Source of the DNA: Glycera tridactyla | Lineage: Eukaryota | NCBI GenBank assembly: GCA_965644265.1 | Contig: OZ286461.1 | Location: forward strand, 114,886,001 to 114,950,000 | Length of the DNA stretch: 64,000 nucleotides | Direction of reading: 5' to 3' | In this document: positions 51,133-53,100 of the stretch, piece after piece | Layout: every line of letters starts with the position of its first letter | How positions within the stretch are numbered: position 1 is the stretch's first letter | Position numbers and translations under genes: made by a program | The notes under the pieces: generated by a model | Seen by the model: only the letters and a program-made list of their open reading frames with translations | Databases searched by the model: none | What the model was told of the DNA's origin: nothing

Positions 51133-53100
51133 CTACTCCTGACTTGATTTGCTATCGGAGTAAATGATGCGCTTCACTCTCCGATAGCTTGACTGATGGT
51201 GTGTCACGTACGTGTTCTTCACAATGACTTGTTCGATGTTGCAGTTCTGAAACATGCTGGCACTGCTGCACATCTGCCGATTGACGGACACTTGCTGCTG
51301 CTTTGTTGCAACGGACTGACTGTTGGCAAACAACTCTTCGTTCTGTTGAATACGGATTGGTGACTGACTCGAATGCAGCTGTTGCCTTCCAAGTGGCTGA
51401 GGTACTTCATCGACGGCAATGGGACGAGATGGCTGGGTTGAAGGCATCGAGTGAAGGACTTGTGGAACTGTAGATGTTGGTCGTTGTGGAACTGTAGATA
51501 TTGGTCGTTGTGGAACTGTAGATGATGGTCGTGCCCAGTGCGAACATCCTGGGGATGGTGTTGATCGGTGAGATGGCACTAGCTGGTTCGATGGTCGGTT
51601 GTCTGAGAGGATATTGGATATGGTGCGCTGCTGGTTTGATGAGATTGAGCTGTAATTCGTTATTGAGTTCACATTTTTGTGTCCTGTTATTTGCATTATG
51701 TGGCTCGGTGGGATATTGTTATCGTTCATTTTTTGGATGGCATACTTCCTAGTCGAGTGGTTGGTGAGACATTTTCCGGTGTCTATTCCAGCATTCTGGA
51801 TCATCTTCTTCATGATGGTTGCTAATTTGGTTTTGCCGATGGGCTGTCTGATGAACCAAGTTTGGTTTGGTCCTGGATTCCGTTGAGTCGTGTTGACGGC
51901 TACATAAAGGGGATCGCTGGCATTACTGTACCCTTCAGGCCGCTTGTTGGCATACTGCTTGTAAGTTTCCACAGGACAGCGTTCTAAATTATCCGGCAGG
52001 GCATAGGCACCAGGACTGACTTTCCGTTGATTAGACACATCAGCACCTGTCCTGGTTTTTGATGCTCGTTCTGTGAATTCGAGGTATTCGCGATTCATGG
52101 TTGAATCGTAGCACAGTTCGATATCACCCCACATTATGCTTCGGTGTTCTCGACAACCTCCACGGCGACCAAACTGAACACGGATGATAAACCACATTGT
52201 ATTGATGATACTACTTGGGGACCAGCACCCAAGTTCTTTTTGTTCGTACAGGAGATCTATTTCTTGGTCTGTCAGTGCTTCCGCTTTCATGGGACCATTC
52301 CCCTTGCCTTGCTGCTTTAGATCTTTTTGTTTACTTTTCAGGCTTGACCTAGTCTTCACAAATGCATGGCCGGACACTAAGCATTCAGAATAGTTCTTCT
52401 TACTTAGGTATCGATTGAATGACCCCAGCATGCTACGTAGAGTCACCGGCTCATAATCACTTCCAGTCTTTGTTCGGACAACCATGAAGAACTTCGCAAG
52501 GTGTTCGTTCAGTTCACTGGGTGGAATGTTTTCCACCAGGCGATCCTCACCACCTGTCAAGAGATATTCTCGGAGGAGGTTCATGTGCCCTCTTGTTTTG
52601 TTTGCTGTCGACTCATTTTCCTTACCTTCAATGAATTCGTCGACTGTCTGATCCACTGCAGCGAATCGTCCTGGTCCTGACTCAATAGGCCTAACTGGTA
52701 CATTCATCACGGGGGAGGGCTCAGTCACAACAATGTCATCAACAAGATCAGCAGCTGCAGTGGCAGCATCTTCTACATCCATGGTATAATCAATCCCACG
52801 CGTGAACTCATCCAAATTGATTGATCTGAAGAACTCATCTTCATCACTGTCCAATGTGTCCATACCTTGTTGGCTACTCTGTGACTTTGCTGATTCATCT
52901 TCTTCCTCCAGAAGGTACCTGGCACATATCCTGACCAGCCCAGTATCAAGCTTGACTCGGTACTCCCGAAATCCCATTGGTGACTCAACATGTATAATAT
53001 TTCCATGGCCGATGACGACTCCAAGATGGTTTTTTAAGGCCACACGGGCACCAACTGGCAAAACTGATGCCATCCTGACAGGAACTGACGTCTGCTGCAC
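51133..53100 (-). CDS. Crypton-type (DUF3504/KIAA1958-like) tyrosine recombinase, intact single-exon ORF; first ATG at 53073 gives 646 aa
   Basis: Uninterrupted 655-codon ORF. Tyrosine recombinase motifs in order: FGRRGG (Arg), SKTRTG (Lys), LTNHSTRK (HxxR), ITGHKN (His), SITNY (Tyr). Family hallmarks: ENESTANKT, LAKFFMVVRTKTGSDYEPVTLRSM, RCPVETYKQYANKRP, WFIRQPIGKTKL and C-terminal FQNCNI. The ATG context is AGGATGG. Confidence 0.92.
   Translation of the reverse strand: MQQTSVPVRMASVLPVGARVALKNHLGVVIGHGNIIHVESPMGFREYRVKLDTGLVRICARYLLEEEDESAKSQSSQQGMDTLDSDEDEFFRSINLDEFTRGIDYTMDVEDAATAAADLVDDIVVTEPSPVMNVPVRPIESGPGRFAAVDQTVDEFIEGKENESTANKTRGHMNLLREYLLTGGEDRLVENIPPSELNEHLAKFFMVVRTKTGSDYEPVTLRSMLGSFNRYLSKKNYSECLVSGHAFVKTRSSLKSKQKDLKQQGKGNGPMKAEALTDQEIDLLYEQKELGCWSPSSIINTMWFIIRVQFGRRGGCREHRSIMWGDIELCYDSTMNREYLEFTERASKTRTGADVSNQRKVSPGAYALPDNLERCPVETYKQYANKRPEGYSNASDPLYVAVNTTQRNPGPNQTWFIRQPIGKTKLATIMKKMIQNAGIDTGKCLTNHSTRKYAIQKMNDNNIPPSHIMQITGHKNVNSITNYSSISSNQQRTISNILSDNRPSNQLVPSHRSTPSPGCSHWARPSSTVPQRPISTVPQRPTSTVPQVLHSMPSTQPSRPIAVDEVPQPLGRQQLHSSQSPIRIQQNEELFANSQSVATKQQQVSVNRQMCSSASMFQNCNIEQVIVKNTYVTHHQSSYRRVKRIIYSDSKSSQE

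Follow-up and report, generated by a model that had tools for sequence, protein, structure and literature searches.

The 64,000-nucleotide stretch of Glycera tridactyla contig OZ286461.1 analysed here (the window) carries on its minus strand an intact open reading frame (ORF) for a tyrosine recombinase, which is probably the single gene of a DNA transposon of about 4.3 kb with predicted ends of the Helitron2/Helentron type. We place the candidate element, with moderate confidence, at about 49158–53451. The ORF is intronless and spans 646–655 codons, as the initial annotation had stated (Table 1). Because full-length homologues begin at the aligned methionine, we adopted the 646-residue product. 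No other non-repeat ORF in the window is as long, the runner-up having 304 amino acids, and it is the sole one with a Pfam match among the ORFs scanned in or near the element; eight other window ORFs of at least 150 amino acids gave no Pfam match. A chance ORF is ruled out by 646 open codons with profile matches. The in-frame triple 24-bp repeat noticed at the outset was recovered by Tandem Repeats Finder (TRF), and its units are translated as RPSSTVPQ, RPISTVPQ and RPTSTVPQ. Neither tblastn nor blastn found a second copy of the element in the window.

By its profile matches, the protein appears to be a tyrosine recombinase of the CryptonA/DUF3504 type, and its predicted active site is complete, which upholds the original Crypton-type assignment. 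Both DUF3504 (PF12012; 74 bits, cut-off 29.7) and Phage_integrase (PF00589; 35.5 bits, cut-off 27.1) scored above the Pfam cut-offs, with a weak QRICH1-domain match on the N-terminal helical domain, and NCBIfam returned an XerA match below threshold and nothing else. Searched with the single sequence, the PDB chains gave no match, and a family profile was required; the best PDB relative by this profile was QRICH1 (E 2e-19). The best Pfam family of the protein is DUF3504. All of the catalytic motifs first listed are present (FGRRG at residue 301, SKT at 338, HSTR at 439, TGH at 463 and NY at 473–474), and an alignment of 10 sequences shows no variation at R304, K339, H439, R442, H465 and Y474. 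The family profile aligns HxxR, GH and the tyrosine to XerA, while R304 stands in a typical box I (FGxRGGxxEH...WGDI); the arginine and lysine assignments are based on motif context and the Cre-like fold, not on residue-level superposition. The AlphaFold2 model of residues 140–500 has a mean predicted local distance difference test score (pLDDT) of 86. With the core model, Foldseek found QRICH1 (9hjt_H, E 7e-10) and Cre chains, the latter with template-modelling (TM) scores of 0.60–0.72 over about 330 columns that cover both domains.

Two further regions, both conserved in the subfamily, flank this core. The N-terminal five-strand barrel is modelled with a pLDDT of about 80 in its strands. Its matches were weak and Tudor/SH3/KOW-like, Foldseek gave none under E 0.015, and an Atlas feature search gave scores too low to be useful. 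Since fold and feature searches gave no firm match, we name this domain an SH3/Tudor-like barrel. The conserved C-terminal motif has a basic/acidic character and closes in a basic stretch and SDS(D/K)xSQ.

A word search retrieved 33 relatives, all with PF12012 (33/33); those that are named belong to the scallop Mizuhopecten and the pearl oyster Pinctada. The nearest are 39–50% identical to the window recombinase, and the search found no homologue above 50% identity. An exact look-up of the protein gave no record, and metagenome contigs scanned with the protein and with an exact 22-nt end motif gave no match.

Like CryptonA elements, the window element has a single intronless DUF3504-type recombinase ORF with the full catalytic set and no reverse transcriptase; CryptonA occurs in molluscs and is the source of domesticated genes of the ZMYM/QRICH1 type (PMC3212892). 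Surveys of bivalve transposable elements also list Crypton-A. A DIRS/Ngaro retroelement is ruled out, as no reverse transcriptase is present and the relatives are compact 2.2-kb elements. Animal Cryptons have been described as lacking terminal repeats and a C-terminal domain, and the 4–6-bp direct repeats of fungal Cryptons were not found in animal ones (Kojima & Jurka 2011, PMC3212892). The family described here, in contrast, has subterminal inverted repeats (subTIRs) of 11–27 nt, a 5' hairpin and a 3' hairpin of 105–260 nt, and its protein bears the N-terminal barrel and the conserved C-terminal motif.

In the window, the proposed 5' end folds on the coding strand into a perfect hairpin, TTTCTCACCCACC-TGC-GGTGGGTGAGAAA (53451–53423), with a DNA fold z-score of -5.5. 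GGTGGGTGAGAAA or its complement occurs at three sites in 64 kb, as compared to 0.08 expected, and all three lie at the element ends. Coincidence is ruled out as an explanation of the 13-mer match by this count and by the family-typical positions. The third site directly precedes the 3' terminal hairpin, which folds at -60.7 kcal/mol (z -12.8) and is the sole long hairpin in 14 kb. Its apex, GCCTCGGC-AAA-GCCTCGGC, resembles that of the related element L004. The proposed element ends showed no short direct repeat. We compared positions 48500–53461 with four public sequencing runs under three organism labels, and one of the contigs (X7) diverges from the window at exactly 53451.

Table 1. Position and basis of the features of the candidate recombinase element, in window coordinates
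Feature	Position	Strand	Basis or remark
5' terminal 13-nt motif (5' subTIR) TTTCTCACCCACC, proposed 5' end	53439..53451	minus (coding strand)	13-mer count; contig divergence; position as in relatives
Inverted repeat of the 5' motif, 3 nt further downstream	53423..53435	minus	Perfect 13-bp-stem 5' hairpin with 53439-53451
5' untranslated/promoter-like region	53074..53422	minus	CCAAT/ATTGG boxes at 53136, 53292, 53312, 53346
Tyrosine recombinase ORF	51133..53100 from GTG (655 codons); 51133..53073 from first ATG at 53073 (646 aa + stop)	minus	ORF scan; intronless
N-terminal five-strand beta-barrel, SH3/Tudor-like (residues ~1-57)	52903..53073	minus	Common to P0001, P0002, P0004
Two-domain core, helical core-binding + catalytic (residues 140-490)	51604..52656	minus	AlphaFold2 and Foldseek
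Catalytic codons (predicted)	R304 52164-52162; K339 52059-52057; H439 51759-51757; R442 51750-51748; H465 51681-51679; Y474 51654-51652	minus	Alignment and motif context
3 x 24-bp in-frame repeat	51460-51532	minus	TRF period 24, 3.0 copies, 93% matches; Pro/Ser/Gln-rich tail of recombinase
Conserved C-terminal motif NCxIxxxxV...Y...RRxKRxIxSDSxxSQ	51136..51276	minus	Aligned across relatives of 34-45% overall identity
(CT)n microsatellite, then G run	50814..50838		~98% run copies lose collinearity here (~50846)
(TC)n microsatellite	50520..50573		Repeat finding
Tandem array, 210-221-bp unit, ~3.3-4 copies	49764..50464		High copy in all four runs
3' subTIR GGTGGGTGAGAAA, inverted 5' motif	49292..49304	minus	Directly precedes 3' hairpin; 4.1 kb from 5' motif
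3' terminal hairpin, ~133 nt, proposed 3' end ...CAGATTGTCTAT at ~49158	49158..49291	minus	Two mirrored pairs of CTCG-on-both-arms mismatches

We examined eight related elements with flanking DNA (L003, L004, L005/6, L007, L008, L009, L010 and L011). A long hairpin begins 170–375 nt past the stop codon in all eight. In seven of them, the hairpin is immediately preceded by an 11–27-nt word that repeats, in inverted form, a word that starts with T and lies 170–600 nt upstream of the start codon; a clear subTIR pair was looked for in L009, and none was found. The scallop pair L005/6 shares 2.16 kb that begins at TTTATTATATAAT and closes at the 3' end of a hairpin of about 140 nt; this hairpin comes immediately after ATTATATAATAAA, which is TTTATTATATAAT in inverted form. 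TTT(T)ATCACATGA opens L007 and L011 from Pinctada as well as L008, which comes from a European Nucleotide Archive (ENA) metagenome assembly and has the same ends; in all three, TCATGTGATAAA(A) adjoins the hairpin on its 5' side. The same arrangement holds for the subTIR pairs of L003 (26 nt), L010 (27 nt) and L004 (12 nt). The end sequences have diverged along with the proteins, which are 37–50% identical, and the gene orientation and the distances to the ends are kept.

The hairpins share a signature. A perfect palindrome is expected to have CGAG on one arm opposite CTCG on the other. When each hairpin was aligned to its own reverse complement, the stem mismatches were almost always CTCG on both arms, read on the coding strand; six hairpins have 28 CTCG as compared to 2 CGAG, usually in two mirrored pairs, one of them near the apex. 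A 351-bp derivative without an ORF (L004:11484–11834) has the Pinctada-type 5' end, the 3' subTIR and the hairpin, and resembles a miniature inverted-repeat transposable element (MITE) partner. Between this derivative and L007, the hairpin stem differs by four compensatory changes and the CTCG bubbles are preserved, and for this reason the stem and its mismatches look as though they are under selection.

In L010, one CTCG-bubbled hairpin of about 135 nt flanks the recombinase gene twice in the same orientation (L010:2557–2690 and L010:4632–4765), and the 27-nt inverted subTIRs lie at 2694–2720 and 4601–4627. This arrangement suggests either an insertion right behind the hairpin of an older copy, in tandem or site-specifically, or a two-hairpin variant.

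The end layout closely follows that of published rolling-circle elements. Helitron2 has short asymmetric terminal inverted repeats, hairpins at both ends and a T start; its 5' repeat is terminal and pairs with downstream bases, and its 3' repeat lies immediately before the terminal hairpin (Bao and Jurka, PMC3627910). Helentron and HINE elements, including Cg_HINE of oyster, consist of a 5' subTIR, an inverted repeat, a microsatellite, central tandem repeats, a 3' subTIR and a palindrome (Thomas et al., PMC4067079; Vojvoda Zeljko et al., PMC7492417), and an autonomous partner of the Cg_HINEs could not be assigned (PMC7492417). The window element has all of these end modules in the same order, with the gene between the inverted repeat and the microsatellites. 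As in Helitron2 and Helentron, the terminal 5' subTIR starts with T and pairs with the inverted repeat. No obvious target duplication was observed. The microsatellites and the tandem array, which are frequent but not obligatory in HINEs, are absent from the 2.2-kb relatives. Unlike Helitron2 and Helentron elements, which encode Rep/helicase(/endonuclease), the sole gene here is a tyrosine recombinase. In our literature search, we found no paper tying Crypton recombinases to Helentron-like ends.

This resemblance raises the question of which enzyme moves the elements. They could be Helentron-type HINEs mobilized in trans by a Rep/helicase, in which case the recombinase would be a long-kept cargo or accessory gene that, for example, resolves or integrates circles. 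The layout just described is a published hallmark of Helitron2, Helentron and HINE elements, down to the variable 5' T-run, the microsatellites and the tandem repeats (PMC3627910, PMC4067079, PMC7492417). In addition, HINEs are abundant in bivalve genomes, and Helitrons capture genes. However, a Rep/helicase ORF is present in none of the nine elements (the window element and its eight relatives), and the 2.16-kb scallop element carries the recombinase alone. Captured genes normally decay, whereas here the catalytic residues are complete in every member, the gene orientation and distances are preserved and the ends have co-diverged with the proteins. The 105–260-nt hairpins, with their conserved CTCG/CTCG mismatches, are at least 10 times longer than the 5–10-bp palindromes of described HINEs, and the ORF-less derivative has the same ends as a recombinase-encoding element. 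Because these compact one-gene elements have kept gene and ends together as both diverged, we consider the main rival, mobilization in trans by a Helentron Rep/helicase, unlikely, and favor the reading of a tyrosine-recombinase transposon with Helitron2/Helentron-type ends.

The initial annotation had left the choice between a mobile element and a domesticated recombinase gene, and the evidence favors a transposon copy. Contigs about 98% identical to 50846–53459 were present in runs of two organism labels (A and B). One of them (X1) continues beyond 53459 into sequence found nowhere in the window, and therefore probably represents another locus or a very different haplotype; neither its flank nor its 11-nt loose end at 49341 matched the window. 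One segment occurs as two variants inside a single run. The run copies X1 and X2 also contain an extra insertion 22 nt past the stop codon, with 13-nt inverted ends (CAGGGCGCGAAGA...) and a 5-nt overlap. This insertion, at window 51107–51111 but absent from the window itself, is a putative polymorphic copy of another transposon inside the element. Among the scallop relatives, P0007 is a recombinase encoded at two loci, which share a 2.16-kb stretch of DNA with one ORF at 99.6% identity. The six differences between them all lie outside the ORF and are clustered, which implies few independent events. The two loci, as judged from their sequences, show that this relative was recently mobile. Helitron2 and Helentron elements insert at TT or T-rich targets and leave no duplication; here, the flanks of six insertions have no duplication and no clear TT, and the 5' T-run is three or four nucleotides long. 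In an oyster, Crypton-A elements are listed among the main sources of polymorphic insertions (2026 preprint, doi 10.64898/2026.02.10.705023), so that the earlier description of animal Crypton transposition as poorly characterized applies less to bivalves.

As for their surroundings, one scallop P0007 copy (L006:4800–4840, 6991–7040) sits within a tandem repeat of about 24 bp, with a unit like ACATACATTAAGGCTGTCAATATA, and the other lies 1.7 kb upstream of a seven-transmembrane (7TM) receptor gene.

A domesticated host gene, like ZMYM2-4, QRICH1, KCTD1 or KIAA1958, would also be expected to keep a long intact ORF with conserved N-terminal barrel and C-terminal motif, and one relative is named 'zinc finger MYM-type protein 2-like' by NCBI. 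The ORF differs from the run copy at 15 listed positions, of which seven are synonymous, and seven codons are changed. This excess of synonymous differences would fit a host gene as well; replacements appear less frequent than expected of neutral decay, though in a small sample. On the other hand, the non-coding upstream part of the run copies is conserved like the ORF (98.9% as compared to about 98%), another copy has a different flank, and the relatives are multi-copy at unrelated loci. The gene is intronless, with transposon ends on both sides, and Pfam detected no zf-MYM, BTB or other host domain in the protein. QRICH1 (PDB 9hjt), one of the domesticated DUF3504 genes beside ZMYM2-4, is the nearest relative of solved structure by both profile and fold; this fused, single-copy host gene is without catalytic residues (PMC3212892), whereas the set is complete here. 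In the family profile alignment, neither the box I arginine nor the lysine is present in QRICH1, which stops short of HxxR, H and Y. Given the absence of a fused host domain and the retention of the catalytic residues, domestication is very improbable. The mobile half of the initial alternative is thus supported by the element ends, the copy of about 98% identity with a different flank and the multi-copy relatives, and the domesticated half is disfavored by the missing host domain.

Several observations weigh against a complete Helentron-ended recombinase transposon in the window. At the 5' end, contig X1 diverges at 53459 rather than at 53451. As no other copy of the window family is readable from end to end, the 3' boundary was placed by means of the 13-mer and by analogy. 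The distance from the stop codon to the hairpin is 1.84 kb, as compared to 0.17–0.37 kb in the relatives, and the 3' region is 1.5 kb longer than theirs. Moreover, 49342–50845, which includes the array, two microsatellites and 213 bp uncovered by contigs, is not collinear with the run copies and may represent nested foreign repeats instead of a native module. The hairpin of the run copy differs from that of the window from 49271 inward, which implies that one of the two has been rearranged; the run contig joins 49271–49341 to different sequence on both sides. Over 49994–50491, contig depth reached hundreds to thousands in the four runs, but the run sequences are Logan contigs of uncertain kind and this depth is not readable as copy number or expression. 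The grouping with CryptonA was made by profile matches. Finally, Helentron-type ends are otherwise served by Rep/helicase proteins, and we infer the action of the recombinase on them.

These irregularities could mean that the family is mobile but that the window copy is young and crippled, its ORF being open through recency and its movement blocked by the 1.5-kb 3' insert and the rearranged hairpin. In keeping with this, 49342–50845 is absent or different in the copies of about 98% identity and holds the high-copy satellite and the microsatellites, and the left arm of the window hairpin lacks a segment that the run copy has after 49271. None of the RNA runs on record contains element sequence. 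Against such damage, both 13-mers are perfect, the hairpin keeps two mirrored CTCG pairs and a family-typical apex, and about half of the differences from the other copy are synonymous, unlike free decay. Variable central modules between conserved ends are also normal in HINE-like elements (PMC7492417). The 3' region fits such a module, and equally fits nested insertions with a rearranged hairpin. We therefore regard a crippled window copy as a possibility of some substance, though a doubtful one. The 210-bp array may itself be a dispersed satellite of the type carried by bivalve HINEs.

Other features in and around the element were also observed. Within its 3' region, 49330–49993 is 90–95% identical to low-depth contigs of all four runs, as a separate dispersed repeat. 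A 1.2-kb minisatellite (53462–54640; periods 24, 42, 66 and 102) adjoins the 5' end of the element and yields long spurious ORFs on both strands, and an (AG)n tract of about 440 bp lies at 48057–48495. CCAAT boxes are present 5' of the ORFs in the distant relatives L001, L002 and L003 too. The recurrence of CCAAT/ATTGG boxes suggests a common NF-Y-type promoter, as predicted from the motifs.

If the recombinase moves its own element, it would presumably act on the hairpin ends. The likely route would begin with excision of the element as a circle. There, the two 13-mers would meet on either side of the hairpin and lengthen its stem, and 3' subTIR, hairpin and 5' subTIR would make up a single extended palindrome, a natural recombination site. 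Recombination would then take place at or beside the folded hairpin. Integron integrase acts on folded attC sites and XerCD on the CTX phage hairpin; in both cases, tyrosine recombinases use imperfect hairpins in which unpaired bases mark the reactive strand. By analogy with attC, the CTCG mismatches, which differ between the two folded strands, might mark the reactive strand here. The attC and CTX systems are bacterial, and we found no sequence relationship between their sites and those described here; for the CTCG bubbles, they serve as a working analogy. In its most far-reaching form, the proposal would be that bivalves harbor tyrosine-recombinase transposons with Helentron-like ends that recombine at a folded, CTCG-bubbled hairpin, as a eukaryotic counterpart of attC and CTX, and that these, and not Rep/helicase Helentrons, are the missing autonomous partners of some, at least, among the abundant satellite-carrying HINE/pearl elements. 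We put this forward as a speculation that, taken as a whole, is improbable.

The gene itself is ordinary, as molluscs were already known in 2011 to have CryptonA recombinases. What was not expected is the pairing of such a recombinase with ends so far tied to rolling-circle Helentrons, a pairing that elements of scallop, pearl-oyster and other bivalve type have kept while their sequences co-diverged. Should a Rep/helicase move these elements instead, they would be a rare example of a Helentron derivative in which a functional recombinase has persisted over a very long period. If the recombinase acts on the ends, animal Cryptons would gain defined cis sites, where their ends had formerly been called undetectable. 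It would also provide a testable mechanism, a hairpin with strand-marking CTCG mismatches. In that case, some bivalve 'Helitron-N/HINE' annotations might be reassigned, with a bearing on the spread of satellite-like arrays.

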